This document shows, piece after piece, positions 4,208 through 37,899 of a stretch of 64,000 bases of DNA; the first letter of the stretch is position 1; each line of letters starts with the position of its first letter. Location of the stretch: the NCBI RefSeq assembly GCF_032444005.1, contig NC_091282.1:474672001-474736000 (forward strand). Reading direction: 5' to 3'. This stretch comes from Ranitomeya imitator (lineage: Eukaryota). The notes beneath the pieces were generated by a model that was given only the letters and a program-made list of their open reading frames with translations, made no database searches and had not been told where the DNA came from. The translations under genes were made by a program, and so were the position numbers.

Positions 4208-7123
4208 CTAATAATTGTATGATACAATATTGTTCTGCTCCAGGAAGACATCCAGGCCTCTCTTGAACCCCTTGACTGAGTTCGCCATCACCACCTCCTC
4301 AGGCAAGCAATTCCAGATTCTCACTGCCCTAACAGTAAAGAATCCTCTTCTATGTTGGTGGAAAAACCTTCTCTCCTCCAGACGCAAAGAATGCCCCCTT
4401 GTGCCCGTCACCTTCCTTGGTATAAACAGATCCTCAGCGAGATATTTGTATTGTCCCCTTATATACTTATTCATGGTTATTAGATTGCCCCTCAGTCGTC
4501 TTTTTTCTAGACTAAATAATCCTAATTTCGCTAATCTATCTGGGTATTGTAGTTCTCCCATCCCCTTTATTAATTTTGTTGCCCTCCTTTGTACTCTCTC
4601 TAGTTAAATTATATCCTTCCTGAGCACCGGTGCCAAAAACTGGACACAGTACTCCATGTGCGGTCTAACTAGGGATTTGTACAGAGGCAGTATAATGCTC
4701 TCATCATGTGTATCCAGACCTCTTTTAATGCACCCCATGATCATGTTTGCCTTGGCAGCTGCTGCCTGGCACTGGCTGCTCCAGGTAAGTTTATCATTAA
4801 CTAGGATCCCCAAGTCATTCTCCCTGTCAGATTTACCCAGTGGTTTCCCGTTCAGTGTGTAATGGTGATATTGATTCCTTCTTCCCATGTGTATAACCTT
4901 ACATTTATCATTGTCAAACCTCATCTGCCACCTTTCAGCCCAAGTTTCCAACTTATCCAGATCCATCTGTAGCAGAATACTATCTTCTCTTGTATTAATT
5001 GCTTTACATAGTTTTGTATCATCTGCAAATATCGATATTTTACTGTGTAAACCTTCTACCAGATCATTAATGAATATGTTGAAGAGAACAGGTCCCAATA
5101 CCGACCCCTGCGGTACCCCACTGGTGACAGCGACTCAGTTAGAGACTATACCATTTATAACCACCCTCTGCTTTCTATCACTAAGCCAGTTACTAACCCA
5201 TTTACACACATTTTCCCCCAGACCAAGCATTCTCATTTTGTGTACCAACCTCTTGTGCGGCACAGTATCAAACGCTTTGGAAAAATCGAGATATACCACG
5301 TCCAACGACTCACCGTTGTCCAGCCTATAGCTTACCTCTTCATAAAAACTGATTAGATTGGTTTGACAGGAGCGATTTCTCATAAACCCATGCTGATATG
5401 GAGTTAAACAGTTATTCTCATTGAGATAATCCAGAATAACATCCCTCAGAAACCCTTCAAATATTTTACCAACAATAGAGGTTAGACTTACTGGCCTATA
5501 ATTTCCAGGTTCACTTTTAGAGCCTTTTTGAATATTGGCACCACATTTGCTATGCGCCAGTCCTGCGGAACAGACCCCGTCGCTATAGAGTCCCTAAAAA
5601 TAAGAAATAATGGTTTATCTATTACATAACTTAGTTCTCTTAGTACTCGTGGGTGTATGCCATCCGGACCCGGAGATTTATCTATTTTAATCTTATTTAG
5701 CCGGTTTCGCACCTCTTCTTGGGTTAGATTGGTGACCCTTAATATAGGGTTTTCATTGTTTCTTGGGATTTCACCTAGCATTTCATATTCCACCGTGAAT
5801 ACCGTGGAGAAGAACGTGTTTAATATGTTAGCTTTTTCCTCGTCATCTACAACCATTCTTTCCTCACTATTTTTTAAGGGGCCTACATTTTCAGTTTTTA
5901 TTCTTTTACTATTGATATAGTTGAAGAACAGTTTGGGATTAGTTTTACTCTCCTTAGCAATGTGCTTCTCTGTTTCCTTTTTGGCAGCTTTAATTAGTTT
6001 TTTAGATAAAGTATTTTTCTCCCTATAGTTTTTTAGAGCTTCAATGGTGCCATCCTGCTTTAGTAGTGCAAATGCTTTCTTTTTACTGTTAATTGCCTGT
6101 CTTACTTCTTTGTTTAGCCACATTGGGTTTTTCCTATTTCTAGTCCTTTTTTCCCCACAAGGTATAAACCACTTACAGTGCCTATTTAGGATGTTCTTAA
6201 ACATTTTCATTTATTATCTGTATTCTTAATTCTGAGGATATTGTCCCAGTCTACCAGATTAAGGGCATCTCTAAGCTGGTCAAACTTTGCCTTCCTAAAG
6301 TTCAGTGTTTTTGTGACTCCCTGACAAGTTCCCCTAGTGAAAGACAAGTGAAACTCTACAATATTGTGGTCGCTATTTCCTAGCTGCCCGACCACCTGCA
6401 GATTTGTTATTCTGTCAGGTCTATTAGATAGTATTAGGTCTAAAAGTGCTGCTCCTCTGGTTGGATTCTGCACCAATTGTGAAAGATAATTTTTCTTGGT
6501 TATTAGCAGAAACCTGTTGCCTTTATGGGTTTCACAGGTTTCTGTTTCCCAGTTAATATCCGGGTAGTTAAAGTCCCCCATAATCAGGACCTCATTATGG
6601 GTTGCAGCTTCATCTATCTGCTTTAGAAGTAGACTTTCCATGGTTTTCGTTATATTTGGGGGTTTGTAACAGACCCCAATGAGAATTTTGTTACCATTTT
6701 TCCCTCCATGAATTTCGACCCATATGGACTCGACATCCTCATTCCCTTCGCTAATATCCTCCCTTAAAGTGGACTTTAGACAAGACTTTACATAGAGACA
6801 AACCCCTCCTCCTCTCCGATTTTTACGATCCTTTCTAAACAGACTGTAACCCTGTAAGTTAACTGCCCAGTCATAGCTTTCATCTAACCGTGTCTCGGTT
6901 ATTCCCACTTGGTCAAAGTTGCCTGTAGATATTTCTGCTTCTATTTCTTCCATCTTGTTTGTCAGGCTTCTGGCGTTTGCGAGCATGCAGTTTAGAGAAT
7001 TTTGTTTTGTTCCAATCTCCTCACTGTGGATTGTTTTAGAAATGTTCTTACCTCCCTTCTGAGTATGTTTTCCTGGGTCTTCTTTGTTCAAGTCTAATGT
7101 TTTTCTTCCCGTCCCCTCTTCTT
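4208..7123 (-). pseudogene. CR1 ORF2 (APE endonuclease + reverse transcriptase), broken by stops and frameshifts
   Basis: Motifs NARSL, GITET, GDFNYP, LDLILSN, SDHN, LDFSKAFDTV, GPVLFNIFINDL, FADD across ORFs 6207-7280, 5488-6210, 5135-5383, 4604-5098 and 4208-4561. Confidence 0.93.
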
Positions 7124-8097
7124 CTAGTTTAACGCCCTCCTGATGAGTGTAGCGAGTCTTCTGGCGAATGTGTGTTTCCCAGGTTTGTTGAGGTGTAGTC
7201 CGTCTCTGGCAAGGAGTCCATCGTACAAGTAATTCACACCGTGGTCCAGGAATCCGAATCCTTGTTGTCTGCACCATCATCTTAGCCAGTTGTTCGCATC
7301 AAGGATCCTGTTCCATCTCCTGGTGCCATGCCCGTCTACTGGAAGGATAGAAGAAAAAACTACCTGTGCATCCAGTTCCTTTACTTTCTTCCCCAACTCT
7401 TCAAAGTCCTTGCAGATTGTCGGTAGGTCCTTCCTTGCCGTGTCATTGGTGCCAACATGTATCAGAAGAAATGGGTGGACGTCCTTGGAGCTGAAGAGCT
7501 TTGGTATCCTATCGGTCACATCCTTGATCATCGCACCTGGAAGGCAGCATACTTCTCTTGCGGTTATGTCCAGTCTGCAGATGGCTGCTTCTGTGCCTCT
7601 CAGTAGTGAGTCTCCCACCACCACCACTCTTCGTTGCTTCTTGGCTGTACTTTTTGCTGTCTTGGCTGTACTTTTTGCTGTCACTTGTTGCTGTGTGCCC
7701 TTTTCTTTTTTGCTTGCTGGTATTGCTTCATCCTCAGGTGTGCATCTTCATCCTCTACAAAGATTTGATATTGGTTCTTCAGTTGTGTGGTTGGTGATTT
7801 CTCCATGGTCTTCTTGCTTCTTTTGGTCACATGCTTCCACTCATCTGCTTTTGGAGGTTCTCTGACACTTTTTTCACCTTCTGTGACCAGTAGAGATGCT
7901 TCTGTTCTGTCTAGGAAGTCTTCATTCTCTTTGATGAGTTTCAAAGTTGCTATTCTTTCTTCCAGACCCCGCACCTTTTCTTCTAAAAGGGCCACTAGTC
8001 TACACTTCTGACAGGTGAAATTCGATTCTTCTTCTGGTCGATCTGTGAACATGTAGCACATGCTGCAGCTCACCATGTAGGTTGTCACATCTGCCAT
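7124..8097 (-). pseudogene. CR1 ORF1: N-terminal CxxC-CxxC zinc finger, coiled coil and SGNH/GDSL esterase
   Basis: CSMC..CQKC; VVVVGDSLLRG; LIHVGTND; stop at 7124-7126; disrupted near 7277 and 7681; 21-bp duplication at 7640-7681. Confidence 0.85.
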
Positions 8098-8190
8098 GTT
8101 GCTCCTAGATCCTGCTGACTTGCTGTGTGTTTTCCTTCTTGTGTAATCTACTCATCCAAGCTTTCTTGCAATAATGTCCTACAGGCGCGC

Positions 8191-8834
8191 GGTTTGGTGA
8201 TGCTTTCCAAGCAGCTGGTCCCGGCTGTACCCAACGATCCTCTAGCTGAGGGAGACTCTTCGCTTTTCCCAGAAGGCACCTGGAATATGCAAATTATCCT
8301 CCTCAAGCTTGAATCCCTGGTTTGGTGATGCTTTCCAAGCAGCTGGTCCCGGCTGTACCCAACGATCTTCTAGCTGAGGGAGACTCTTCGCTTTTCCCAG
8401 AAGGCACCTGGAATATGCAAATTATCCTCCTCAAGCTTGAATCCCTGGTTTGGTGATGCTTTCCAAGCAGCTGGTCCCGGCTGTACCCAACAATCTTCTA
8501 GCTGAGGGAGACTCTTCGCTTTCCCAGAAGGCACCTGGAATATGCAAATTATCCTCCTCAAGCTTGAATCCCTGGTTTGGTGATGCTTTCCAAGCAGCTG
8601 GTCCCGGCTGTAACCAACGATCTTCTAGCTGAGGGCGACTCTTCGCTTTTCCCAGAAGGCACCTGGAATATGCAAATTATCCTCCTCAAGCTTGAATCCC
8701 TGGTTTGGTGATGCTTTCCAAGCAGCTGGTCCCGGCTGTACCCAACGATCTTCTAGCTGAGGGAGACTCTTCGCTTTTCCCAGAAGGCACCTGGAATATG
8801 CAAATTATCCTCCTCAAGCTTGAATCCCTGGTTT
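8191..8834 (-). repeat. Five tandem 127-128 bp monomers forming the CR1 5' end, each with an ATGCAAAT octamer
   Basis: Units start at 8191, 8319, 8447, 8574 and 8702; octamers at 8287, 8415, 8542, 8670 and 8798. Confidence 0.92.
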
Positions 8835-9770
8835 CATGACTATGAAAATTGTAAATTCACACTAAAGGCATCAAAACTATGCATTAACACATGTGGAATT
8901 ATATACTTAACAAAAAAGCGTGAAACAACTGAAAATATGCATTATATTCTAGGTTCTTCAAAGTAGCCACCTTTTGCTTTGATGACTGCTTTGCACACAC
9001 TTGGCATTCTCTTGATGAGCTTCAAGAGGAAGTCACCAGAAATGGTTTTCACTTCACAGGTGTACCCTGTCAGGCTTAATAAGTATGATTTATTGCCTTA
9101 TAAATGGGGTTGGGACCATCAGTTGTGCTGATCAGAAGTCTGGAGGATACACAGCTGAGAGTCCTATTGAATAGACTGGTAGAATTTGTATTATGGCAAG
9201 AAAAAAGCAGCTAAGTAAAGAAAAACGAGTGGCCATCATTACTTTAAGAAATGAAGGTCAGTCAGTCAGAAAAATTGAGAAAACTTTGAAAGTGTCCCCA
9301 AGTGCAGTTGCAAAAACCATCAAGCGCTACAAAGAATTGGCTCACATGAGGACCGCCCCAGGAAAGGAAGACCAAGAGTCACCTCTGCTTCTGAGGATAA
9401 GTTTATCCGAGTCACCAGCCTCAGAAATTGCAGGTTAACAGCAGCTCAGATTAGAGACCAGGTCAATGCCACACAGAGTTCTAGCAGCAGACACATCTCT
9501 ATAACAACTGTTAAGAGGAGACTTTGTGCAGCAGGCCTTCATGGTAAAATAGCTGCTAGAAAACCACGTCTAAGGACAGGCAACAAGCAGATGAGACTTG
9601 TTTGGGCTAAAAAACACAAGGAATGGACATTAGACCAGTGGAAATTTGTGCTTTGGTCTGATGAGTCCAAATTTGAGATGTTTGGTTCCATCCACCGTGT
9701 CTTTGTGCGACACAGAAAAGGTGAACGGATGGACTCTACATGCCTGGCTCCCACCATGAAGCATAGAGGA
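8835..9770 (+). mobile_element. Tc1-like transposon fragment truncated at both ends
   Basis: Frameshifted transposase from 9193 (MARKKQLSKEKRVAII HTH; WSDESKFE); partial left TIR region. Confidence 0.88.
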
Positions 9771-10168
9771 GTGTGTACTTATATGTGTGTATGTATGATT
9801 GCGTGTGTGTATCAGTGAATAAGTTCGATTGTATGCATGTGTATAGTGTGTGTGTTTGTGTGTATAAATGTGTCTATAATTGAAAAGAGTGGGAGAATTG
9901 CCTTGTACTAAAACTCAGCCAGAAACGTCAAAACATTACAGATATTACTGACCCTGTGTTTTTATCGTCATGGTCGATGGGTGCATGAGCTGCCCTTTAT
10001 TGATATGCACTACTCCTGTCCTAGTGCATGCTGCGATCCCTGAGAAAATTTGTGGTAATTATTGAATGCTTGTGCTGAGCACACCAACATTACACGAATC
10101 AAAAAAACATTAATTTGAATGAGCCCTGAGGCTCACTGGCCTCTGTTTAGTGCATACACCAGGATATA

Positions 10169-11790
<1,622 letters not shown>

Positions 11791-11808
11791 TACATGTATA
11801 GATATATA

Positions 11809-14800
11809 GAAACAGGAACACATGGGCTACTTGCACAAACGTATCAACCAAATACCCTGTTTTTTACATCTTTTACTAGCACTTGCGGATTACTGCAACA
11901 TTTTTTCAAACTGAGTGTTTTTGGTTTTACTATTCTCTTTTGTGTCTTCAGGTTTCTTGGTGGTGTGTGAACATGATCATACAGACTTGTTCACTGTGCA
12001 AGTAGCCCATGTGTTCCTGTTTCCATAATTGTTCTCTTGTGTCTACAAGACTGGGGAGTTCCACCACTCCTCTTGGGCTATCTGCACAAAAGCTGTTCTA
12101 CCCTGTATGCACACATGGATTTTTCCTCTCTGAACCCTGTTCACACAGGTTATATACAGATGATCAGGTTTTTAAATACATCAGATAGGGATTGCATACA
12201 TTAGTTAGGACTGCTCTGATAAGGGTATACCGTGAAGATTGGTAGAGCAGCTTAGTATACATTTTTTGCAAAAAACGTATCAACCAAATACCCTGTTTTT
12301 TACATCTTTTACTAGCACTTGCGGATTACTGCAACATTTTTTCAAACTGAGTGTTTTTGGTTTTACTATTCTCTTTTGTGTCTTCAGGTTTCTTGGTGGT
12401 GTGTGAACATGATCATACAGACTTGTTCACTGTGCAAGTAGCCCATGTGTTCCTGTTTCCATAATTGTTCTCTTGTGTCTACAAGACTGGGGAGTTCCAC
12501 CACTCCTCTTGGGCTATCTGCACAAAAGCTGTTCTACCCTGTATGCACACATGGATTTTTCCTCTCTGAACCCTGTTCACACAGGTTATATACAGATGAT
12601 CAGGTTTTTAAATACATCAGATAGGGATTGCATACATTAGTTAGGACTGCTCTGATAAGGGTATACCGTGAAGATTGGTAGAGCAGCTTAGTATACATTT
12701 TTTGCAAAAAACGTATCAACCAAATACCCTGTTTTTTACATCTTTTACTAGCACTTGCGGATTACTGCAACATTTTTTCAAACTGAGTGTTTTTGGTTTT
12801 ACTATTCTCTTTTGTGTCTTCAGGTTTCTTGGTGGTGTGTGAACATGATCATACAGACTTGTTCACTGTGCAAGTAGCCCATGTGTTCCTGTTTCCATAA
12901 TTGTTCTCTTGTGTCTACAAGACTGGGGAGTTCCACCACTCCTCTTGGGCTATCTGCACAAAAGCTGTTCTACCCTGTATGCACACATGGATTTTTCCTC
13001 TCTGAACCCTGTTCACACAGGTTATATACAGATGATCAGGTTTTTAAATACATCAGATAGGGATTGCATACATTAGTTAGGACTGCTCTGATAAGGGTAT
13101 ACCGTGAAGATTGGTAGAGCAGCTTAGTATACATTTTTTGCAAAAAACGTATCAACCAAATACCCTGTTTTTTACATCTTTTACTAGCACTTGCGGATTA
13201 CTGCAACATTTTTTCAAACTGAGTGTTTTTGGTTTTACTATTCTCTTTTGTGTCTTCAGGTTTCTTGGTGGTGTGTGAACATGATCATACAGACTTGTTC
13301 ACTGTGCAAGTAGCCCATGTGTTCCTGTTTCCATAATTGTTCTCTTGTGTCTACAAGACTGGGGAGTTCCACCACTCCTCTTGGGCTATCTGCACAAAAG
13401 CTGTTCTACCCTGTATGCACACATGGATTTTTCCTCTCTGAACCCTGTTCACACAGGTTATATACAGATGATCAGGTTTTTAAATACATCAGATAGGGAT
13501 TGCATACATTAGTTAGGACTGCTCTGATAAGGGTATACCGTGAAGATTGGTAGAGCAGCTTAGTATACATTTTTTGCAAAAAACGTATCAACCAAATACC
13601 CTGTTTTTTACATCTTTTACTAGCACTTGCGGATTACTGCAACATTTTTTCAAACTGAGTGTTTTTGGTTTTACTATTCTCTTTTGTGTCTTCAGGTTTC
13701 TTGGTGGTGTGTGAACATGATCATACAGACTTGTTCACTGTGCAAGTAGCCCATGTGTTCCTGTTTCCATAATTGTTCTCTTGTGTCTACAAGACTGGGG
13801 AGTTCCACCACTCCTCTTGGGCTATCTGCACAAAAGCTGTTCTACCCTGTATGCACACATGGATTTTTCCTCTCTGAACCCTGTTCACACAGGTTATATA
13901 CAGATGATCAGGTTTTTAAATACATCAGATAGGGATTGCATACATTAGTTAGGACTGCTCTGATAAGGGTATACCGTGAAGATTGGTAGAGCAGCTTAGT
14001 ATACATTTTTTGCAAAAAACGTATCAACCAAATACCCTGTTTTTTACATCTTTTACTAGCACTTGCGGATTACTGCAACATTTTTTCAAACTGAGTGTTT
14101 TTGGTTTTACTATTCTCTTTTGTGTCTTCAGGTTTCTTGGTGGTGTGTGAACATGATCATACAGACTTGTTCACTGTGCAAGTAGCCCATGTGTTCCTGT
14201 TTCCATAATTGTTCTCTTGTGTCTACAAGACTGGGGAGTTCCACCACTCCTCTTGGGCTATCTGCACAAAAGCTGTTCTACCCTGTATGCACACATGGAT
14301 TTTTCCTCTCTGAACCCTGTTCACACAGGTTATATACAGATGATCAGGTTTTTAAATACATCAGATAGGGATTGCATACATTAGTTAGGACTGCTCTGAT
14401 AAGGGTATACCGTGAAGATTGGTAGAGCAGCTTAGTATACATTTTTTGCAAAAAACGTATCAACCAAATACCCTGTTTTTTACATCTTTTACTAGCACTT
14501 GCGGATTACTGCAACATTTTTTCAAACTGAGTGTTTTTGGTTTTACTATTCTCTTTTGTGTCTTCAGGTTTCTTGGTGGTGTGTGAACATGATCATACAG
14601 ACTTGTTCACTGTGCAAGTAGCCCATGTGTTCCTGTTTCCATAATTGTTCTCTTGTGTCTACAAGACTGGGGAGTTCCACCACTCCTCTTGGGCTATCTG
14701 CACAAAAGCTGTTCTACCCTGTATGCACACATGGATTTTTCCTCTCTGAACCCTGTTCACACAGGTTATATACAGATGATCAGGTTTTTAAATACATCAG

Positions 14801-15872
14801 ATAGGGATTGCATACATTAGTTAGGACTGCTCTGATAAGGGTATACCGTGAAGATTGGTAGAGCAGCTTAGTATACATTTTTTGCAAAAAACGTATCAAC
14901 CAAATACCCTGTTTTTTACATCTTTTACTAGCACTTGCGGATTACTGCAACATTTTTTCAAACTGAGTGTTTTTGGTTTTACTATTCTCTTTTGTGTCTT
15001 CAGGTTTCTTGGTGGTGTGTGAACATGATCATACAGACTTGTTCACTGTGCAAGTAGCCCATGTGTTCCTGTTTCCATAATTGTTCTCTTGTGTCTACAA
15101 GACTGGGGAGTTCCACCACTCCTCTTGGGCTATCTGCACAAAAGCTGTTCTACCCTGTATGCACACATGGATTTTTCCTCTCTGAACCCTGTTCACACAG
15201 GTTATATACAGATGATCAGGTTTTTAAATACATCAGATAGGGATTGCATACATTAGTTAGGACTGCTCTGATAAGGGTATACCGTGAAGATTGGTAGAGC
15301 AGCTTAGTATACATTTTTTGCAAAAAACGTATCAACCAAATACCCCGTTTTTTACATCTTTTACTAGCACTTGCGGATTACTGCAACATTTTTTCAAACT
15401 GAGTGTTTTTGGTTTTACTATTCTCTTTTGTGTCTTCAGGTTTCTTGGTGGTGTGTGAACATGATCATACAGACTTGTTCACTGTGCAAGTAGCCCATGT
15501 GTTCCTGTTTCCATAATTGTTCTCTTGTGTCTACAAGACTGGGGAGTTCCACCACTCCTCTTGGGCTATCTGCACAAAAGCTGTTCTACCCTGTATGCAC
15601 ACATGGATTTTTCCTCTCTGAACCCTGTTCACACAGGTTATATACAGATGATCAGGTTTTTAAATACATCAGATAGGGATTGCATACATTAGTTAGGACT
15701 GCTCTGATAAGGGTATACCGTGAAGATTGGTAGAGCAGCTTAGTATACATTTTTTGCAAAAAACGTATCAACCAAATACCCTGTTTTTTACATCTTTTAC
15801 TAGCACTTGCGGATTACTGCAACATTTTTTCAAACTGAGTGTTTTTGGTTTTACTATTCTCTTTTGTGTCTT
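11809..15872 (+). repeat. Tandem array of 9.3 x 436-bp units with a 16-bp TSD and a 29-bp terminal inversion; candidate retrotransposed multimer
   Basis: Exact 436 period (C of AACGTATC at 11840, 12276 ... 15764). CATGTATAGATATATA at 11793-11808 and 15873-15888. 11809-11837 is the reverse complement of 11995-12023. Confidence 0.95.
12211..12250 (+). ncRNA. Degenerate hammerhead-like motif, one per 436-bp unit
   Basis: CTGCTC-TGATAAG-GG TATA CC-GTGAAG-ATTG-GTA-GAGCAG. Stem I and stem II are present but the core is non-canonical. Confidence 0.3.
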
Positions 15873-15904
15873 CATGTATAGATATATATTAACATTATCA
15901 CACT

Positions 15905-16140: not shown

Positions 16141-17031
16141 ATCACAGAAAATAATTAATAAAATACATTCCCCGCCCTTCATCATGCTGTGATTTCAATT
16201 ACATCCAAACACATTCGGTTCCGACCTTCCTATAAATGCAGGCTTTACCATGATATTAGCCAGAGGTAAGTGTTCACACTAGGCACTCAGGTCAGGGACC
16301 CATTCGATTACCTTGACGTTGGTGGATGGGCTCACATTTTTTGGCTAAATTTGGTGCTAAACATCTCATGTGTTTTTTCATAGATTTCACAAGCCATTAT
16401 GCTATTCACATTTCATGTATTACACATTCCCTTGCTTTAGTATAATTAAGTGCAGCCATTTATCTATTTGCTAAATAGATATTAAACTAGAAAGAGGAAA
16501 AGTGCACTGAACTGCCCAGTCATGCCAAGGGTGCACCGATTGCCTGTTTTACATTCTTAAATAAAAACTATTTATAGCAAATGCAACGAAGAATTTGAAC
16601 AGGAAAACCACATGCACACATTGAGAATTTGCTGAGTTTTTTACCTCAGTATTTGTATGCCAAAACCAGGAGTGGGGGGAAAAATACAGAAGTCGTGCAC
16701 GTGTTTCTGTTATATTTTCCTCTGAATGTTCCATTCATGTAAGCTTACTCTAAAAGTGAATATTTATATATTAATTAACAAGCATAATTTACAAAACTGT
16801 GAGCAATATAAAAGTCAACATGAAAAATTAAAAAGACTATTTCTTATTTTCTTAGCCACAGGCCATAACCTAAAAAAAAACCCTGGAAGCCCTTGTCAAA
16901 CAAGCACATCCCTGAATATTCCCGTGGTCCCATTTCCTTCATTTCCCTTGCTACCAAACCCCCTGTTGCTTCAACTTGGTGAAAATCAGGACTAGACCTG
17001 ATGGAAGTGAAGAAACACATTTATTGGTATA

Positions 17032-19278
17032 CTAGATGATGGCCCGATTCTAACGCATCGGGAATCCTAGAATATGTATGTAGTTTATTTATGAAGATTT
17101 TAGAATAATACAATGAATGCACAGAATTCGGCTGGCCGGGCGCGAGCAATTAGCGAAGCGTGGTTCAAATCCCGAGCCAATTCACGGCCAGAGAGCGCCT
17201 GTCGCTGATTGTTCACGGCCTGCCACGTAGTATATAGCACAGCCACGTAGTATATAGCAGCCCACATAGCATGTGACACAGCCACGTAGCATATAACACA
17301 GCTCGCGTAGTATATAACAGCCCACGCAGTGTATAACACAGCCCTCGTAGTGTATAACACAGTCACGTAGTATATAACACAGCCCACATAGTATATTGCA
17401 CAGCCACGTAGTATGTAGCACAGCCCAAGTAGTATATTGCACAGCCCACATAGTATATAGCACAGCCACGTAGTATATAGCACAACCACGTAGTATATTG
17501 CACAGCCCACGAAGTATATTACACAGCCACATAGTATATTACACAGCCCTTGTAGTATATAGCTCAGCGACGTAGTATATAACAGCCCACAAAGTATATA
17601 ACACAGCCCATGTAGTGTATAACACAGCCCACGTAGTGTACAACACAGCCACGTAGTATATAACACAGCCCACGTTGTATATTGCACAGCCACATAGTAT
17701 ATTGCACAGCGACGTAGTATATTGCACAGCCCACGTAGTATATTGCACAGCCACATAGAATATTGCAGTCCACGTAGTATATTGCACAGCCCAAGTAGTA
17801 TATTGCCCAGCCACGTAGTATATAGCACAGCCATGTAGTATATTGCAGAGTCACATAGTATATAGCACAGCCCCATAGCATATTGCACAGCCCAAGCAGT
17901 ATATTACACAGCCCGTGTAGTATATAGCACAGCGACATAGTATTTAACACAGCCCATGCAGTATATAACACAGCCACATAATCTCACATAGTATATAGCA
18001 CAGCCACGTAGTGTATAGCACAGCCTAATAGTATATTGCACAGCCACGTAGTATATTGCACAGTCCACATAGTATATTGCACAGTCCACGTAGTATATAT
18101 CATAGCCCACGTAGTATATAGCACAGCCACGTAGTATATTATACAGCCGAAGCAGTACTGTATATAACACAGCTCACGCAGTATATAGCACAGCCCACGC
18201 AGTATATTACAGCCACATAATATATTACACAGCCACGTAGTTTATTGCACATTCGATATAGTATATAGCATAGCGACGTAGTATGTAACAGAGCCCATGC
18301 AGTATATAACACAGCCCACGTAGTCCCACATAGTATATAGCACAGCCAAGTAGTATATTGCACAGCCACGAAGTATATTGCACAGTCACATAGTATATTG
18401 CACAGTCCGCATAGTATATGGCACAGCCCACGTAGTATATAGCACAGCCATGTAGTATATTGCACAGCCGACACGGTATATTGCAGAGCCAACGCAGTGT
18501 ATAACACAGCCCACGCAGTATATAGCACAGGCCACGCAGTATATTACACAGCCACGTAGTATATTACACAGCCCACGTAGTTTATTGCACATCCGACATA
18601 GTATATAGCATAGCGACGTAGTATGTAACACAGCTCATGCAGTATATAACACAGCCCACATAGTCCCACATAGTATATAGCACAGCCACGAAGTATATTG
18701 CACAGCCACATAGTATATTGCACAGTCCACGTAGTATATAGCACAGCCCACGTAGTATATAGCACAGCCATGTAGTATATTGCACAGCCGACGCAGCATA
18801 TTGCAGAGCCAACGCAGTATATAACACAGCCCACGCAGTATATAGCACAGGCCACGCAGTATATTACACAGCCACGTAGTATATTACACAGCCCACGTAG
18901 TATATAGCACAGCCATGTATTATATTGCACAGCCGACGTACTATATAACACAGCCAACACAGTATATAACACTGTCCACGTAGTATATAACACAGCCCAC
19001 GCAGTATATAACACTGCCCACGTAGTATATAGCACAGCCCACGCAGTATATAGCAATGTGGGCACCATATCCCTTTTAAAAAAATGAATTAAAATAAAAC
19101 ATAGTTATATACTCACCCTCCGACGGCCCCCGGATCCAGCCCAGGCCTTTCCCGCTCCTCGTGTGCTGGCCGCGACCAATCAGCGACATGGGATTTCCGT
19201 GACAGACAGACAGAAAGACAGACAGATAAACAGAAAGACAGAAAGACGGAAGTGACCCTTAGACAATTATATAGAAGA
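17032..19278 (-). mobile_element. Non-autonomous Helitron with a large internal minisatellite
   Basis: On the minus strand: A|TC 5' end, 3' hairpin CCCGAT-GCGTTAGA-ATCGGG, then CTAG|T; no TSD; termini shared with 46352-47716. Confidence 0.88.
17220..19060. repeat. ~22-26 bp minisatellite (cacagcc(c)acgtagtatattg) inside the Helitron
   Basis: Dozens of variant units; source of spurious Cys/Tyr-rich ORFs. Confidence 0.92.
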
Positions 19279-21642: not shown

Positions 21643-21743
21643 ATGAATAACAAAAATGGTGACACCACTTGGCTCACGCAAATTACAAGCATGACTGGAG
21701 AAATAGCAACTGGTACTTGGGATGACAATACTACTACTAAGGT
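21643..21743 (+). pseudogene. N-terminus of an older PLE ORF; continues in frame at 52547
   Basis: MNNKNGDTTWLTQITSM..TTTK, preceded by acceptor tcttgttttatag at 21625; aligns with the MDFRARDKAWL start of the younger PLE. Confidence 0.65.
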
Positions 21744-23031: not shown

Positions 23032-24237
23032 TTAAAGGAATGGTACAAAACTTATATTTTCATTTAATCCTTTCGGATGGACCGTATCTAATGTCCAGAT
23101 CCATCTGGTTTCTTTTTGTGCCAGTCTGGAGCTAACTTTCCCACCCCGGATCCCTGGATCAATGATATCAATCCCTCTCACTCTAAGTGTGGTACTGTCA
23201 CTAATGTGGAATAGTTTGAAATGACGTGGCAGAGTGCGAAGCGTGGATGTGTCGTCATGGCCGGCGGCCGCCTGAATGCCAAGTACATGCTCATGCACGC
23301 GCACTTTAAGTTGCCGTGTTGTGAGCCCTATATAAATGAGATTGCATGGACATGTAGCAAAGTAAATCACATTACAGGTGTTACATGTAATGTGTTTTCT
23401 AATCTCATATGTCCTTGCTCCTGAAGAGTTAGTAAAAGTATCAATGCAATCAACATTAGGACAGGCGACACACCGGCCACAAGGCGCACATCCACGCCTA
23501 GGAACTCTGCCATCAATAAAGTTAAATCTGGAATCCACTTGATAGTGACTTCTAACCAAACAGTCCTTGAGATTCTTGGACCGCCGAATAACCACACTCG
23601 GAGCGTCAGGGAGGATCTTTTTGAGGATTGGATCTGTTTGTAATATAGGCCATGCTTTCTCAAGACATTGTTTCATACGAGAGAATTGGGCATGATAGTT
23701 CGTAATGAACCGTATCTTATTAGATTTATTTTTTGCTCATCACGGGTATACAGTAAAGATTGTAGTGTCGAATATTTTGCCCTGTGATAGGCCCGTTTAA
23801 TAGCCCGCCTACCATACCCTCTATCAGAAAATCTGTTACACAGATCTTTGGCCTTAACCTCAAAATCCTCATTGTTCGAACAGATCCTTCGGAGGCGAAG
23901 GAACTGTCTGATAGGGACAGAATTCACCATATATTTAGGGTTTGAGGACGAGGCATCCAGTAAGCTGTTGGTCGAGGTCTCCTTCCTATATATGGTAGTT
24001 TGCAACATATTGTTCCCATCCTACCATACTGTAACATCCAAAAAGTTAATTACATCTCTACCACTTTGTTAAGTGACAAAGATGTTCTTGTCATTAGTAT
24101 TGATAGTATTGATGAAGACCTGTAGAGACTCCAAAGTACCCTGCCAGATCAAAAAAACATCGTCGATGTACCGCAACCAAATGGGGATGCGGTCCATTGA
24201 CGAATGATCTGACAGGGCGAGGTCCCTCTCCCACAGC
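23032..24237 (-). pseudogene. PLE ORF 3' part: RT C-terminus, Zn-finger-like linker and GIY-YIG endonuclease
   Basis: RYIDDVF at 24159-24170; CAPCGRCVAC; VIYFATCPCNLIYIGLTTRQLKVRVHEH; TLDTVHPKGLN. Confidence 0.9.
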
Positions 24238-27200
24238 TGTTATGAACAGGTAATTCAGAACCACAATGGACATTGAAGTTCAGAGCACACAAAGTGACCT
24301 GACAATTACCAAAAACAAGGACGAGCTCTGAGATGTGGAAACTCTGCTGACCGCAGTCCCTAATCCTATCACACCACACTAGAGGTAGCCGTGGATTGCG
24401 CCTAACGCTCCCTATGCAACTCGGCACAGCCTGAGAAACTAACTAGCCCTGAAGATAGAAAAATAAGCCTACCTTGCCTCAGAGAAATTCCCCAAAGGAA
24501 AAGGCAGCCCCCCACATATAATGACTGTGAGTAAGATGAAAATACAAACACAGAGATGAAATAGACTTAGCAAAGTGAGGCCCGACTTACTGAATAGACC
24601 GAGGATAGGAAAGATAGCTTTGCGGTCAACACAAAAACCTACAAACAACCACGCAGAGGGGCAAAAAGACCCTCCGCACCGACTAACGGTACGGAGGTGC
24701 TCCCTCTGCGTCTCAGAGCTTCCAGCAAGCAAGAAAAAACAAAATAGCAAGCTGGAAAGAAAAAATAGCAAACAAAAATAACACAAGCAAAACTTAGCTT
24801 ATGCAGGATAGAGAGGCCACAGGAACGATCCAGGAGGAAGCAAGACCAATACTAGAACATTGACTGGAGGCCAGGATCAAAGCACCAGGTGGAGTTAAAT
24901 AGAGCAGCACCTAACGACTTAACCTCATCACCTGAGGAAGGAAACTCAGAAGCCGCAGTACCACTTTCATCCACCAAAGGAAGCTCATAGACAGAACCAG
25001 CCGAAGTACCACTCTCGACCACAGGAGGGAGCTTGGCCACAGAATTCACAACAGTACCCCCCCCCCTTGAGGAGGGGTCACCGAACCCTCACCAGAGCCC
25101 CCAGGCCGACCAGGATGAGCCACATGAAAGGCACGAACCAGATCGGCAGCATGGACATCAGAGGCAAAGACCCAGGAATTATCTTCCTGACCATAACCCT
25201 TCCACTTAACCAGATACTGGAGTTTCCGTCTCGAAACACGAGAATCCAAAATCTTCTCCACTATATACTCCAATTCCCCTTCAACCAAAACCGGAGCAGG
25301 AGGATCAATAGATGTAACCACAGGTGCCACGTATATCTCCGCAACAATGACCTATGGAACACGTTATGGATGGAAAAAGAAGCTGGAAGAGTCAAACGAA
25401 AAGACACAGGATTAAGAACCTCAGAAATCCTATATGGACCAATGAAACGAGGCTTAAATTAGGAGAGGAAACCTTCATAGGAATATAACGAGATGACTAC
25501 CAAACCAAATCCCCAACACGAAGTCGGGGACCCACACAGCGCCTGCGGTTAGCGAAACGTTGAGCCTTCTCCTGGGACAAAGTCAGATTGTCCACTACAT
25601 GAGTCCAAATCTGCTGCAACCTATCCACCACAGTATCCACACCAGGACAGTCCGAAGACTCAACCTGCCCTGAAGAGAAACGAGGGTGGAACCCAGAATT
25701 GCAGAAAAACGGCGAAACCAAGGTAGCCGAGCTGGCCCGATTATTAAGGGTGAACTCAGCCAAAGGCAAAAAGGACACCCAATCATCCTGATCAGCAGAA
25801 ACAAAACATCTCAGATATGTTTCCAAGGTCTGATTGGTTCGTTCAGTCTGGCCATTTGTCTGAGGATGGAAAGCCAAGGAAAAAGACAAATCAATGCCCA
25901 TCCTAGCACAAAAGGCTCGCCAAAACCTCGAAACAAACTGGGAACCTCTGTCAGAAACGATGTTCTCTGGAATGCCATGTAAACGAACCACATGCTGGAA
26001 AAACAATGGCACCAAATCAGAGGAGGAAGACAATTTAGACAAGGGCACCAAATGGACAATCCTAGAGAAGCGATCACAAACCACCCAAATGACCGACATC
26101 TTTTGAGAGACGGGGAGATCCGAAATAAAATCCATAGAGATATGTGTCCAAGGCCTCTTCGGGACCGGCAAGGGCAAAAGCAACCCACTGGCACGAGAAC
26201 AGCAGGGCTTAGCCCGAGCACAAATCCCACAGGACTGCACAAAAGAACGCACATCCCGCGACAGAGACGGCCACCAAAAGGATCTAGCCACAAAATCTCT
26301 GGTACCAAAGATTCCAGGATGACCAGCCAACACGGAACAATGAACTTCAGAGATAACTTTATTCGTCCACCTATCAGGGACAAGCAGTTTCTCCGCTGGG
26401 CAACGGTCAGGTCTATTAGCCTGAAATTTATGCAGCACCGGCCGCAAATCAGGGGAGATGGCAGACAAAATTACCCCCTCTTTGAGAATACCCGCCGGCT
26501 CAGGCAAACCCGGAGAATCGGGCACAAAACTCCTAGACAGGGCATCCGCCTTCACATTTTTAGAGCCCGGAAGGAACGAAACCACAAAGTCAAAACGGGA
26601 GAAAAACGGCGACCAACGAGCCTGTCTAGGATTCAACCGTTTGGCAGACTCGAGATAAGTCAAGTTTTTGTGATCAGTCAAGACCACCACGCGATGCTTA
26701 GCTCCTTCAAGCCAATGACGCCACTCCTCGAATGCCCACTTCATGGCTAGCAACTCTCGATTGCCAACATCATAATTTCGCTCAGCAGGCCAAAATTTCC
26801 TGGAAAAGAAGGCGCATGGTTTCATCACCGAGCAATCAGAACTTCTCTGCGACAAAACAGCCCCTGCTCCAATCTCAGAAGCATCAACCTCGACCTGGAA
26901 CGGAAGCGAAACATCTGGTTGGCACAACACAGGGGCAGAAGAAAAACGACGCTTCAACTCCTGAAAAGCTTCCACAGCAGCAGAAGACCAATTGACCACA
27001 TCAGCACCCTTCTTGGTTAAATCAGTCAACGGTTTAGCAATGCTAGAAAAATTAGCGATGAAGCGACGATAAAAATTAGCAAAGCCCAGGAACTTCTGCA
27101 GACTCTTCAGAGATGTTGGCTGAGTCCAATCATAAATGGCCTGAACATTAACAGGGTCCATCTCGATAGTAGGAGAAAAAATGAACCCCAAAAATGAAAT

Positions 27201-28352
27201 CTTCTGAACACCAAAGAGACACTTTGACCCCTTCACAAACAAAGAATTAGCACGCAGGACCTGGAACACCATTCTGACATGCTTCACATGAGACTCCCAA
27301 TCATCCGAGAAGACCAAAATATCATCCAAGTATACAATCAGGAATTTATCCATGTACTCTCGGAAGATGTCATGCATAAAGGACTGAAACACTGATGGAG
27401 CATTAGAAAGTCCGAATGGCATAACCAGGTACTCAAAATGGCCTTTGGGCGTATTAAATGCTGTTTTCCATTCATCGCCCCGTTTAATACGCACAAGATT
27501 ATACGCATCACGAAGATCTATATTGGTGAACCAACTAGCCCCCTTAATCCGAGCAAACAAATCAGACAGCAGCGGCAAGGGGTACTGAAATTTGACCGTA
27601 ATTTTATTTAGAAGGCGGTAATCAATACAAGGTCTCAGCGAACCATCCTTCTTGGCCACAAAAAAGAACCCCGCTCCCAATGGCGACGATGACGGGCGAA
27701 TATGACCCTTCTCCAAAGACTCCTTCACGTAACTCCGCATAGCGGCGTGCTCAGGTACAGAAAAATTAAACAGTCGACCCTTAGGAAACTTACTACCAGG
27801 AATCAAATCGATAGCACAAACACAATCCCTATGCGGAGGTAGGGCATTGGACTTGGGCTCATCGAATACATCTCGATAATCAGACAAGAACTCTGGGACC
27901 TCAGAAGGGGTGGATGATGAGATAGACGGAAATGGAACATCACCATGTACCCCCTGACAACCCCAGCTGGACACAGACATTGATTTCCAATCTAATACTG
28001 GGTTATGGACTTGTAGCCATGGCAACCCCAACACGACCAAATCATGCAGATTATGCAACACCAGAAAGCGAATATCCTCCTGGTGCGCAGGAGCCATGCA
28101 CATGGTCAGCTGGGTCCAATACTGAGGCTTATTCTTGGCCAAAGGCGTAGCATCAATTCCTCTCAATGGAATAGGACACTGCACCAGGTGGAGTTAAATA
28201 GAGCAGCACCTAACGACTTAACCTCATCACCTGAGGAAGGAAACTCAGAAGCCGCAGTACCACTCTCATCCACCAAAGGAAGCTCATAGACAGAACCAGC
28301 CGAAGTACCACTCTCGACCACAGGAGGGAGCTTGGCCATAGAATTCACAACA
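24238..28352 (-). mobile_element. Gypsy chromovirus A (Tf1/sushi-like), internally deleted
   Basis: 3' LTR 24238-25052 (TGTTGTGA..TCATAACA); PPT at 25053; 5' LTR remnant 28181-28352; TSD CACAGC at 24232-37 and 28353-58. Confidence 0.93.
25046..28184 (-). pseudogene. pol: pol of element A: RT, RNase H, integrase, chromodomain
   Basis: [45 protein letters not shown]. Confidence 0.93.
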
Positions 28353-28954
28353 CACAGCCCTGTTGTGAATTCTGCTTTTGGGCTCCCTCCGGTGGTTGTA
28401 GAGGGTAATGCAGTTGTGCCTGGACTGCAGGATTGGACAGGTGTATCTGCTAATTGCAAAGCTGACTGGGGTATATAGCTTTGCAGGACTCTTTAGTCCC
28501 TGCCAGTTGTCCATTGTTCCTTTGGAAGTGTTGGTCCTGCTTGACCTCTCCTGCTTGCTGCCAATTCAGCAAAGTTAAGTGTTTGCTTCATTTTGTTTTG
28601 GACACACTGCTGTGTGTTTATTTTCTGTGCTATCTTGTTTCAATTTTGTTCCTGCTAGATTGTGCCTGAAGTTTTTCTCAGTCTAGTTGGATTTGCTGGA
28701 GTCGCAGATATACTCTCCACATCTTTAGTTAGGTGGTGGAGTTTTTGTATTTTTCTGCTGTGGATATTTTGTAGTGTTTTATGCTGACCGCATAGTATCC
28801 TGTACTTTCCTTTCCTTTCTAGGTAGAAGTGGCCTCCTTTGCTTATCCCTGTTTTCAGTCTGCGTGTGTCTTTTCCTCTCCTACTCACAGTCATTATTTG
28901 TGGGGGGCTGTCTATCCTTTGGGGGTCTACTCTGAGGCAAGAGAGTTTTCCTAT

Positions 28955-31900
28955 TCCTTTAAGGGGAATTGATGCTACACCCTTGGCTAAAGATAAGCCT
29001 CAGTTTTGGATACAGGTGACCATGCACATGGCGCCAGCCCACCAGGAAGATTGTCGATTTCTGGTATTGCATAATTTGAATGATGCTGTCGTGCTGGGTT
29101 TCCCATGGTTGCAGGTCCATAATCCTGTTTTGGATTGGAAGTCCATGTCTGTAACTAGTTGGGGTTGTCAGGGGGTTCATAATGATGATCCTCTGATGTC
29201 AATCGCCCCTTCTCCCTCTTCTGAAATTCCGGATTTTTTGTCTGATTTTCAGGATGTATTCGATGAGCCTAAGTCCAGTTTCCTTCCACCGCACAGGGAC
29301 TGCGATTGTGCTATTGATTTGATTCCAGGCTGTAAGTTTCCTAAGGGTCGACTTTTCAACCTTTCTGTACCTGAACATACCGCCATGCGGAGTTATATTA
29401 AGGAGTCTTTGGAGAAGGGGCATATTCGTACATCTTCCTCACCGTTGGGAGCAGGGTTCTTTTTTGTTGCTAAAAAAGATGGTTCTTTGAGACCCTTTAT
29501 TGATTATCGCCTCTTAAATAAGATCATGGTCAAGTTTCAATACCCCTTGCCTTTGCTTTCTGATTTGTTTGCTAGGATTAAGGGAGCTAGTTGGTTTACT
29601 AAGATTGACCTTCGGGGGGCTTATAATCTTGTTCGTATAAAGCAGGGTGATGAATGGAAAACTGCGTTTAACACGCCCGAAGGCCATTGTGAATACCTTG
29701 TGATGCCATTCGGACTCTCTAATGCTCCATCTGTTTTTCAGTCCTTCATGCATGATATCTTCCGGAGTTATCTTGATAAATTCTTGATCATTTATTTGGA
29801 CGATATTTTGATTTTTTCCGATGATTGGGAGTCTCATGTGCAGCAGGCCAGGATGGTATTTCAGATCCTTCGTGACAATGCTTTGTTTGTGAAAGGGTCT
29901 AAGTGTCTTTTAGGGGTGCAGAAGGTTTCCTTTTTGGGCTTTATTTTTTCTCCCTCATCTATTGAGATGGATCCGGTTAAGGTTCAGGCCATTCATGATT
30001 GGATTCAGCCCACATCCGTGAAGAGACTTCAGAAATTTTGGGGTTTCGCTAATTTTTATCGCCGTTTCATTGCTAATTTTTCCAGCGTGGTTAAACCCTT
30101 GACTGATTTGACTAAGAAGGGCGCTGATGTGGCGAATTGGCCCTCTGCGGCTGTCTCTGCCTTTCAAGAACTTAAACGTCGTTTTTCTTCTGCTCCAGTG
30201 TTGCACCAGCCGGATGTTTCTCTTCCGTTTCAGGTTGAGGTTGACGCTTCTGAGATTGGGGCAGGGGCCGTTTTGTCTCAGAGGGATCCTGTTGGTTCCT
30301 TGATGAAACCGTGTGCCTTCTATTCCCGTAAATTTTCGCCTGCGGAATGCAATTATGATGTCGGAAATCAGGAGTTGTTGGCTATGAAGTGGGCGTTTGA
30401 GGAGTGGCGACATTGGCTTGAGGGAGCTAAGCACCGTATTGTGGTCTTGACCGACCATAAGAATTTGATTTACCTCGAGTCTGCCAAACGGTTGAATCCT
30501 AGACAGGCTCGATGGTCCTTGTTTTTTTCTCGTTTTGATTTTGTGGTCTCGTACCTTCCTGGTTCTAAGAATGTTAAGGCTGATGCCCTCTCTAGGAGTT
30601 TTTTGCCTGATTCTCCTGAGGTTTTGGAACCAGTCAGTATTTTGAAGGAAGGGGTGGTCCTTTCTGCCATTTCTCCTGATTTACGACGGGTTCTTCAGAA
30701 ATTTCAGGCTGACAAACCTGACCGTTGTCCTGTGGGGAAACTGTTTGTTCCTGACAGATGGACTAGTAGAGTGATTTCTGAGGTTCATTGTTCTGTGTTG
30801 GCTGGTCATCCTGGTATTTTTGGTACCAGAGACTTGGTTGGTAGGTCCTTTTGGTGGCCTTCTTTGTCGCGTGATGTGCAGTCTTTTGTGCAGTCCTGTG
30901 GGACTTGTGCGCGGGCCAAGCCTTTTTGCTCCCATGCTAGTGGGTTGCTTTTGCCATTGCCGGTCCCCGAGAGGCCCTGGACACATATTTCTATGGATTT
31001 TATTTCCGATCTTCCTGTTTCCCAAAGGATGTTGGTTATCTGGGTTGTCTGTGACTGATTTTCTAAGATGGTTCATTTGGTGCCTTTGCCTAAATTGCCT
31101 TCTTCTGATTTGGTTCCGTTGTTTTTTCAGCATGTGGTACGTTTGCATGGTATTCCGGAGAATATTGTGTCCGACAGAAGTTCCCAGTTTGTTTCTAGGT
31201 TTTGGTGGGCCTTTTGTGCCAAGCTGGGCATTCTTTTTCTTCTGCATTTCATCCTCAGACAAATGGCCAGACTGAGCGAACTAATCAGACCTTGGAGACC
31301 TATTTGAGATGCTTTGTGTCTGCTGATCAGGTTGATTGGGTGGCTTTTTTGCCATTGGCTGAGTTTGCCCTTAATAATCGGGCTAGTTCGGCTACTTTGG
31401 TTTCGCCTTTTTTTTGTAATTTTGGTTTTCATCCTCGTTTTTCTTCTGGGCAGGTTGAGCCTTCTGACCTTCCTGGTGTGGATTCTGTGGTCGACAGGTT
31501 GCAGCAGATTTGGGCTCATGTGGTGGACAATTTGGTGCTGTCTCAGGAGGAGGCTCAACGTTTTGCTAACCGTCGTCGGTGTGTTGGTTCCCGGCTTCGG
31601 GTTGGGGATCTGGTTTGGTTATCTTCCCGTCATGTTCCTATGAAGGTTTCTTCCCCTAAGTTTAAGCCTCGATTTATTGGTCCATATAGGATTTCTGAGA
31701 TTATTAATCCGGTGTCCTTTCGCCTGGCGCTTCCGGCCTCTTTTGCTATTCATAATGTCTTCCATAGATCTTTGTTGCGGAAATATGTGGAGCCCGTTGT
31801 TCCCTCTGTTGATCCTCCGGCCCCTGTGTTGGTCGATGGGGAGTTGGAATATGTTGTTGAGAAGATTTTGGATTCTCGTTTTTCGAGGCGGAAGCTTCAG

Positions 31901-32068
31901 TACCTTATCAAATGGAAGGGTTATGGCCAGGAGGATAATTCTTGGGTTTCTGCCTCTGATGTCCATGCTGCTGATTTGGTTCATACCTTTCATCGGGCTC
32001 ATCCTGATCGGCCTGGGGGCTCTGGTGAGGGTTCGGTGACCCCTCCTCAAGGGGGGGTACTGTTGTGA
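28955..32068 (+). pseudogene. pol: pol of element B with a stop at 31056 and an integrase frameshift
   Basis: YLDD RT, RNase H, HHCC-DDE integrase, GPY motif, chromodomain. Confidence 0.92.
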
Positions 32069-32988
32069 ATTCTGCTTTTGGGCTCCCTCCGGTGGTTGTA
32101 GAGGGTAATGCAGTTGTGCCTGGACTGCAGGATTGGACAGGTGTATCTGCTAATTGCAAAGCTGACTGGGGTATATGTTATGACCTGGTGATTCAGAAAC
32201 ACAATGGACCTGGTGGTTAAGAGCACACAAAGTGACCTGATAGTTACTAATAACATAGGACGAGCTCTGAGACGTGGGAACTCTGCTGACCGCAATCCCT
32301 AATCCTATCACACCACACTAGAGGTAGCCGTGGAGCGCTCCTGACCAGACCTAGGCGCCTCGGGCACAGCCTGAGAAACTAGCTAGCCCTGAAGATAGAA
32401 AAATAAGCCTACCTTGCCTCAGAGAAATTCCCCAAAGGAAAAGGCAGCCCCCCACATATAATGACTGTGAGTAAAGATGAAAATACAAACACAGAGATGA
32501 AATAGATTTTAGCAAAGTGAGGCCCGACTTACTGAGTAGACCGAGGATAGGAAAGATAGCTTTGCGGTCAGCACAAAAACCTACAAACAACCACGCAGAG
32601 GGCGCAAAAAGACCCTCCGCACCGACTAACGGTACGGAGGTGCTCCCTCTGCGTCCCAGAGCTTCCAGCAAGCAAGACAAACCAATATAGCAAGCTGGAC
32701 AGAAAAAATAGCAAACAAAAGTAACACAAGCAGAATTTAGCTTATGCAGGGCAGACAGGCCACAAGAACGATCCAGGAGAGAGCAAGACCAATACTGGAA
32801 CATTGACTGGAGGCTAGGAACAAAGAACTAGGTGGAGTTAAATAGAGCAGCACCTAACGACTTAACCTCGTCACCTGAGGAAGGAAACTCAGAAGCCGCA
32901 GCCCCATTCACATCCACCAGAGGAAGCTCATGGACAGAACCAGCCGAAGTACTACTCATGTCCACAAGAGGGAGCTTGACCACAGAAT

Positions 32989-37156: not shown

Positions 37157-37166
37157 TAGTACTTTG

Positions 37167-37175
37167 GGCCTCCAG
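37167..37175 (-). promoter_or_regulatory. Putative self-priming PBS of element C
   Basis: CTGGAGGCC, 3 nt after the 5' LTR end, is complementary to (G)GCCTCCAG ~29 nt downstream of the LTR TATTTAA. Confidence 0.6.
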
Positions 37176-37899
37176 AACTGTTATGACCTGGTGATTCAGA
37201 AACACAATGGACCTGGTGGTTAAGAGCACACAAAGTGACCTGATAGTTACTAATAACATAGGACGAGCTCTGAGACGTGGGAACTCTGCTGACCGCAATC
37301 CCTAATCCTATCACACCACACTAGAGGTAGCCGTGGAGCGCTCCTGACCAGACCTAGGCGCCTCGGGCACAGCCTGAGAAACTAGCTAGCCCTGAAGATA
37401 GAAAAATAAGCCTACCTTGCCTCAGAGAAATTCCCCAAAGGAAAAGGCAGCCCCCCACATATAATGATTGTGAGTAAAGATGAAAATACAAACACAGAGA
37501 TGAAAAAGATTTTAGCAAAGTGAGGCCCGACTTACTGAATAGACCGAGGATAGGAAAGATAGCTTTGCGGTCAGCACAAAAACCTACAAACAACCACGCA
37601 GAGGGCGCAAAAAGACCCTCCGCACCGACTAACGGTACGGAGGTGCTCCCTCTGCGTCCCAGAGCTTCCAGCAAGCAAGACAAACCAATATAGCAAGCTG
37701 GACAGAAAAAATAGCAAAAAAAGTAACACAAGCAGAATTTAGCTTATGCAGGGCAGACAGGCCACAAGAACGATCCAGGAGAGAGAAAGACCAATACTGG
37801 AACGTTGACTGGAGGCTAGGAACAAAGAACTAGGTGGAGTTAAATAGAGCAGCACCAAACGACTTAACCTCGTCACCTGAGGAAGAAAACTCAGAAGCC

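Follow-up and report, generated by a model that had tools for sequence, protein, structure and literature searches.

A 64,000-nucleotide stretch of the Ranitomeya imitator genome (contig NC_091282.1, positions 474,672,001 to 474,736,000 of the forward strand), referred to here as the window and numbered from its first letter, carries an insertion at 11793–15888 that is built from 9.26 head-to-tail copies of a non-coding 436-bp unit. The insertion is real and very young. We favor, with moderate confidence, its origin in a single event of the type carried out by Penelope-like elements (PLEs), in which a multimeric non-coding RNA was inserted by target-primed reverse transcription.

Structure of the 436-bp Array

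Tandem Repeats Finder (TRF) delimited the array at 11837–15874, with a period of 436, 9.3 copies (9.26 to two decimals), 99% matches, and 0% indels. In register, full units 1–8 are identical and the ninth differs solely by T>C at 15346, while the final partial copy (15761–15874, in the register from 11837) again has T at the matching site. This is the single substitution across 4,038 bp of array. The total insert length is 4.07 kb, and the GC content of the unit is 39%. A preliminary description of this DNA had given the same period, about 9.3 units, and the same substitution, and TRF and the comparison of units bear this out. It had also reported a 16-bp direct repeat bounding the array, a 29-bp inverted piece of the unit at the left end, and the absence of poly(A), terminal inverted repeats (TIRs), and open reading frames (ORFs), all of which were found again.

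The 16-mer CATGTATAGATATATA occurs exactly twice in the window, and both occurrences abut the insert (Table 1). The right-hand copy overlaps the unit by 2 nt (CA); internal copies read GTCTTCA followed by GG at this point. Since CA can be assigned either to the unit or to the 16-mer, the true target-site duplication (TSD) is 14–16 bp long, and the 16 bp claimed earlier for the TSD is the length of the exact repeat. The CA at the right TSD could equally derive from the unit, as a priming-site microhomology of 2 nt. At the left end, the inverted piece matches its source in the unit at 29 of 29 positions. It overlaps the direct array by one base, A at 11837. The pentamer TTGCA, at which the two had been thought to join by microhomology, is indeed present in both junction partners, beside but not at the crossover.

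Neither an A-tail at either array end nor a TIR was found, and the unit contains no ORF >60 aa, no part resembling a tRNA or a short interspersed element (SINE), and no Rfam family. The 15-nt motif TCTYTTGTGTCTWCA is present twice per unit, and the end of its first copy is the end of the array. The region of this copy, 11936–11950, is a candidate for the putative site at which the reverse transcriptase (RT) initiates. No further copies or fragments of the unit were found elsewhere in the window. The unit's small ORF gave no match to homologues or to its exact product, an exact 22-mer of the unit had no match in JGI (Joint Genome Institute) metagenome contigs, and 20-mers of the unit had no occurrence in a full-text library of papers. 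A scan of the unit for bacterial-type promoters and terminators was uninformative, the host being a eukaryote.

Several kinds of element were rejected on this anatomy: a DNA transposon (there is no TIR, and a 16-bp TSD fits none), a Helitron (a TSD is present), and a tRNA- or SINE-derived element (there is no tRNA-like part). A classical satellite grown in place, without an insertion signature, is at odds with the exact 16-bp TSD, the inverted end piece, and one substitution in 4,038 bp. The array lies immediately beside the right end of a Tc1-like non-autonomous element (10167–11792; 1.6 kb), which has ~226-bp TIRs that are 87% alike and TA at both ends, and which is very high-copy in sequencing reads.

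Table 1. Features of the insertion and of the PLE in the same window (positions in the window)
Feature	Position	Strand	Basis or remark
Left TSD copy CATGTATAGATATATA, 81% A+T	11793–11808		Exact 16-mer, directly after the end of the Tc1-like element at 11792
Inverted 5′ piece, 29 nt	11809–11837	−	Exact reverse complement of 11995–12023
5′-truncated first copy, last 114 nt of the unit (register from the 3′ end site)	11837–11950	+	Periodicity starts at 11837; register from the array end, ...GTCTTCA
Nine full 436-nt units, ending ...TGTGTCTTCA, CA in common with the right TSD	11951–15874	+	Identical except T>C at 15346
Right TSD copy, first 2 nt (CA) ambiguous with the unit	15873–15888		
15-nt motif TCTTTTGTGTCTTCA at the sense-strand 3′ end	11936–11950	+	Second copy, TCTCTTGTGTCTACA, at 12033–12047
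Stretch at the 3′ end of the unit, ...TTTTGTGTCTTCA			
One PLE insertion: 5′-truncated copy and full 4,386-nt copy	21726–46116	−	Object of comparison outside the array

The Unit in Reads and Contigs

Two index searches showed that many sequencing runs under several organism labels contain nearly all words of the unit. Contigs of four runs were aligned on 11400–12310, which covers the left flank and one unit. Thousands of contigs align to the unit at 85%–100% identity, and when their depth is summed, the unit exceeds the neighboring Tc1-like element several-fold. Closed 436-nt cycles (joint 12272 to 11837) were present in the contig sets X15 and X20, with 0 and 1 differences, and identical pieces in X6; under four organism labels, all of related frogs, the unit is identical or has one difference. 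At least two common family variants occur, for example G/A at 11951 and A/T at 11976. The former position lies directly behind the first copy of the 15-nt motif, and its two bases are found at ∼50:50 in reads. The unit is a major, very high-copy repeat that is homogeneous across close relatives. The ratio of its depth to that of the Tc1-like element was ∼1–19× in runs taken to be RNA, a label that is a guess, versus ∼3–60× in DNA runs.

The loose ends of contigs were compared among the best-supported ones listed, six in all. Where contigs run on into unrelated DNA on the 3′ side, the last unit base in one of them (X6, from another species label) is 11950, which is also where the array ends, a coincidence with a chance of ∼1.4% among the six ends. 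In two X15 contigs it is 12027, and the outer end of the inverted piece (12023) lies 4 nt away. The exits into unrelated DNA on the 5′ side are scattered (12184 and 12262). Few as they are, these contigs suggest that the 3′ ends of the family are fixed and its 5′ ends variable, a pattern of recurrent 3′ and scattered 5′ ends that is predicted by target-primed reverse transcription from fixed start sites. In X1, three contigs continue past unit position 12088 with the reverse complement of 11980–11994. This join is a fold-back junction through the internal 15-nt inverted repeat of the unit (11995–12009 and 12074–12088); inverted joins of the 436-nt family therefore exist at other loci.

A Tandem PLE in the Same Window

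BLAST within the window resolved the PLE insertion into two copies in direct succession, the first 5′-truncated (46103 to 42796) and the second full (42795 to 40903 and 24231 to 21739). The pair, and not each copy, is flanked by a 13–14-bp TSD, TACTACTAAGGTT(A) on the + strand, at 21725–21738 and 46104–46117. The insertion amounts to 1.4 tandem copies inside one TSD. Its ORF at 23032–23676(−) encodes a zinc-finger-like CxxC cluster and GIY...YIG, with a weak Pfam match; the Atlas neighbors of this ORF are animal GIY-YIG families, and RT motifs (..YIDDVF..) lie upstream of it. The element was later split by a chromovirus nest (24232–40902) and by a miniature inverted-repeat transposable element (MITE; 42979–44257) flanked by TTAA. 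A PLE active in this genome thus produced a tandem inside one 13–14-bp TSD. The window PLE has no hammerhead that is detectable by Rfam, and a ribozyme-free hitchhiker would therefore be unsurprising here.

The 1,279-bp insert at 42979–44257, which sits in the 3′ untranslated region of the upstream PLE copy, is bounded by duplicated TTAA, has the ends CCCCTTTCTGACC.../...GGTCATGAAGGGG, contains many internal palindromes, and looks like a piggyBac-type MITE.

A Model for Insertion in One Event

A PLE-type enzyme is the best candidate for mobilizing the unit, because head-to-tail multimers and an inverted 5′-truncated piece inside one TSD together form the published PLE signature (PMC8557442, PMC11167929), which is also seen in the window PLE. 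PLE hallmarks include frequent 5′ truncation, partial tandems, and an inverted 5′-truncated copy at the 5′ end, and non-autonomous relatives give "multicopy head-to-tail insertions" (PMC8557442). In the array, the 114-nt truncated copy and nine full units lie inside one pair of 16-mers. The counterpart of the inverted copy is the 29-nt piece, which is far shorter than typical inverted arms; its position at the sense-strand 5′ end would fit either the PLE "inverted 5′-truncated copy" or twin priming (PMC8557442). The purified anole PLE protein cleaves and extends both target strands, prefers AT-rich DNA, and starts reverse transcription at two internal RNA sites without target homology (PMC11167929). 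The hammerhead is dispensable for this protein, which is thought to use unprocessed multimeric transcripts (PMC11167929). In its structure, the array, with its 81% A+T target, agrees with all of these traits.

The insertion could have proceeded as follows. An endonuclease would make staggered nicks 14–16 bp apart in AT-rich DNA, leaving the duplication that is observed. The 3′ end of the bottom strand would then prime cDNA on a multimeric RNA of + sense at ...GUCUUCA, by way of a 2-nt microhomology; the junction is observed, and one further contig points to a fixed internal priming site. The RT would copy 9.26 unit lengths of the template and stop inside a unit, with the observed 5′ truncation as the outcome. 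The most likely template is RNA produced by read-through of an array of this family that was already present. Finally, the 3′ end of the top strand would prime on the RNA as well, 73 nt farther downstream, copy 29 nt, and switch to the first cDNA beside the shared TTGCA, leaving the short inverted piece, if this order is the right one. Direct observations are the sequences at the junctions, the truncation, the duplicated target, and the young age of the insertion. We infer the enzyme, the order of events, a read-through rather than a circular template, and the joint arrival of the nine copies. The preliminary description had likewise proposed a retrotransposition-type insertion by a PLE RT, around a circular RNA or along a multimeric transcript. 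The staggered-cut duplication, the 5′ inversion, the defined 3′ end, and the PLE as best candidate stand; the circular template is supported by no observation.

Several points weigh against the one-event insertion. The two arms start at different bases of the unit (11950 versus 12023), unlike in the simplest form of priming on both strands. The evidence for fixed 3′ ends consists of three contigs. The depth ratio of the unit is no higher in presumed-RNA than in DNA runs. In addition, the unit was compared with the one PLE family in the window, and whole-element local alignment gave a score of 38 versus 33 ± 4.5 for shuffles, which is not significant. Against the last 120 nt of the PLE, the part that aligns best is the 3′ end of the array (TTTACTATTCTCTTTTGTGTCTTC--AGGTTTCTTG versus TTTACTATTGTGATGTTTGTTTTCATAAGGTTTGTTG), with 28/37 identities and p ∼0.04 versus dinucleotide shuffles. 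This weak similarity of the 3′ ends is a lead, not a result.

Alternatives to a One-Event PLE Insertion

The nine copies may have arisen after the insertion. A retrotransposed copy of 1.3 to 2 units, complete with TSD and inverted piece, would have been expanded later to 9.26 by replication slippage or unequal crossing-over. Such growth fits the structure seen today, because expansion inside the insert leaves the TSD and the inversion intact, and the earlier claim that the two features exclude local amplification was too strong: a short TSD-flanked insertion that grows later keeps both. A 2026 preprint on vertebrate retrozymes not based on long terminal repeats (non-LTR retrozymes) also favors local amplification by unequal crossover after insertion (10.64898/2026.07.22.740005). 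However, the array shows a single substitution over 4 kb, and any expansion would have needed to finish almost immediately. Moreover, multimeric insertions of PLEs and of the non-autonomous elements related to them are on record (PMC8557442), and the window PLE is itself tandem within one TSD. Later growth is considered unlikely, while remaining the strongest competitor of the one-event insertion.

The RT could also have come from a long interspersed element (LINE) of the L1, L2, CR1, or RTE type that copied a multimeric repeat transcript with classical twin priming. It is well established that L1 twin priming, too, typically leaves a TSD of 14–16 bp and an inversion at the 5′ end with microhomology, and a LINE with AP-endonuclease and RT domains is present in the window at 4604–7280(−). 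On the other hand, the array ends ...TGTGTCTTCA directly at the TSD, without a poly(A) or microsatellite tail, and nothing else in the window, this LINE included, resembles the unit. Head-to-tail multimers are also not the usual product of LINEs or SINEs, and a LINE origin appears quite improbable. In the LINE itself, the AP-endonuclease is encoded at 6207–7280 and the RT at 4604–5098; a 128-bp tandem repeat lies upstream at 8063–8967.

Ribozyme and Fold Tests

Rfam cmscan was run with permissive filters (E ≤ 10) on both strands of 11700–13200, which spans more than three units. No hammerhead, twister, HDV-like, hatchet, pistol, or hairpin ribozyme was found in the unit at E ≤ 10; the only matches were microRNA-type chance matches. 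The whole 64-kb window had no match to Rfam at the gathering score. In a motif scan, CUGANGA was absent from the + strand of the unit; that strand has CUGAUAA...GAAG, with the invariant G8 and A15.1 replaced. The − strand has one CUGAAGA, without helix II or a properly placed GAAA. A hammerhead or other ribozyme in the unit was rejected on the negative Rfam scans and on these CUGA-type cores, which lack invariant residues or helix II. The fold of the unit compared with dinucleotide shuffles gave z = −1.95 (+ strand) and −1.5 (− strand), and the stem-loop between the two putative start sites is not significant (z = −0.48).

The array had been called retrozyme-like, and the unit does show several retrozyme features: it is non-coding, tandem, and low in GC, with a TSD longer than 4 bp (14–16 bp) and a length of 436 nt. 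Retrozyme units are ∼170–400 nt long (up to 972), with an amphibian mean of 316 bp and a range of 51–972 (PMC7229834; 10.64898/2026.07.22.740005). In the strict sense, the name does not apply, given no ribozyme at E ≤ 10 and a fold with only the modest z values above. Retrozyme membership was rejected because the defining hammerhead of each unit was absent from the permissive Rfam and motif scans. As judged from its sequence, the array is by definition not a retrozyme.

These results also bear on rolling-circle reverse transcription of a 436-nt circular RNA. A single circular template would give identical copies, as seen here, and the closed 436-nt cycles in two contig sets could be read in the same sense, but a genomic tandem array looks alike. 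No ribozyme was found at E ≤ 10, and the CUGA-type cores are defective on both strands. The fold is no more stable than that of shuffles, unlike the highly self-paired circular RNAs of retrozymes (PMC7229834), and no special RNA abundance is apparent in the runs guessed to be RNA. The rolling circle is therefore given a slim chance, below that of a LINE. Capture of a satellite or extrachromosomal circular DNA piece of the repeat at a staggered break, via end joining or template switching, is the least probable origin: the repeat is extremely abundant, and microhomologies and short inverted filler are established features of break repair, but a duplication of exactly 16 bp requires nicks at that spacing, which is typical of element-encoded nucleases, and the right end matches to the base an end in a contig from another species (X6, 11950).

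Other Tandem Repeats in the Window

Two long arrays of a 20/41-bp minisatellite (GCCACGTAGTATATAGCACA) are present at 17030–19130 and 46730–47720. They are in opposite orientation and ∼75% alike, and 52 nt of their flanks also match (17030–17081 versus 47667–47718). The two arrays may represent repeats from the interior of a single transposon family. At 56095–56610, a 31-bp repeat of the CCCCATATATTGCTCCATACA... type is arrayed in tandem, and a lone related copy is found 6.7 kb away, at 63244–63295.

Implications and Comparison with Known Systems

Two views of the origin of retrozyme arrays have been put forward. In one, circular RNA is copied into tandem cDNA as the element inserts (PMC7229834); in the other, a single insertion is followed by local unequal crossover (10.64898/2026.07.22.740005). 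A very young, TSD-bounded 9-mer without a ribozyme bears on the conflict between them. If the arrays are already multimeric when they insert, self-cleavage and circles can both be dispensed with, which matches the in vitro result for the PLE protein (PMC11167929), and PLE-type reverse transcription would be a direct route for dispersing satellite-like DNA through a giant amphibian genome.

A broader proposal is made only tentatively. A ribozyme-free non-coding RNA family might exploit the PLE machinery and seed satellite-like arrays of ∼4 kb at new sites in a single step, with the copy number set by the length of one RT run. The insertion, at 4.07 kb, is similar in size to the PLE unit, at 4.39 kb; should this likeness hold genome-wide, the copy number is set at insertion. 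If single-step seeding is true, this abundant frog "satellite" would spread by retrotransposition and not by unequal crossing-over, and multimers would be able to insert in vivo without the hammerhead that retrozymes carry.

Among known systems, L1 twin-priming insertions share with the array a TSD within the range of 7–20 bp, a 5′ inversion joined by microhomology, and loss of the RNA between the priming points. They differ in that the array has no poly(A) tail and its body is a tandem multimer. Autonomous PLEs of the Penelope, Poseidon, and Neptune groups (Evgen'ev and Arkhipova, 2005, as cited in PMC8557442; Frangieh et al., 2024, PMC11167929) are alike in combining a partial tandem and an inverted 5′-truncated copy in one TSD of variable length, and in their AT-rich target, internal initiation by the RT, and priming on both strands. 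In contrast to these, the 436-nt unit has no RT or endonuclease (EN) ORF and is ten times shorter. Its inverted arm is 29 nt long and starts 73 nt from the start of the direct arm, whereas the published "tail" is 30–40 bp.

The animal non-LTR retrozymes (Cervera and de la Pena, 2020, PMC7229834; Li, Clavereau, and Pollet, 2026, 10.64898/2026.07.22.740005) resemble the array in having non-coding tandem units of a few hundred nucleotides, low GC, long TSDs, and thousands of copies, and in co-occurring with PLEs as their proposed mobilizers. However, each retrozyme unit has a type I hammerhead and a circular RNA, whereas the 436-nt unit is without a detectable ribozyme or an unusual fold. The nine copies here also exceed the maximum of seven found in 75% of families (10.64898/2026.07.22.740005). 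A ribozyme and an RNA circle are not needed for the proposed insertion, and the element can therefore be described as a ribozyme-free analog of the animal non-LTR retrozymes. On this reading, the array is a ribozyme-free variant of the PLE-dependent tandem retroelements.

By analogy, the behavior of the element is closest to that of non-autonomous PLE derivatives that insert as head-to-tail multimers, for example MRC1 and the non-autonomous Chlamys elements of Chlamydomonas (Craig et al., 2021, PMC8557442). Those elements belong to a green alga and to the clade with an N-terminal EN, whereas the host here is a frog with known PLEs that carry a C-terminal GIY-YIG. Their 3′ ends are shared with identified autonomous partners, whereas the frog unit has no significant match to the one PLE family with which it was compared. 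Insertions of MRC1 and non-autonomous Chlamys elements have pseudo-LTRs (PMC8557442). Like the 436-bp unit, they are non-coding, are found as multicopy head-to-tail insertions, have no canonical hammerhead, and show minimal divergence indicative of recent activity.

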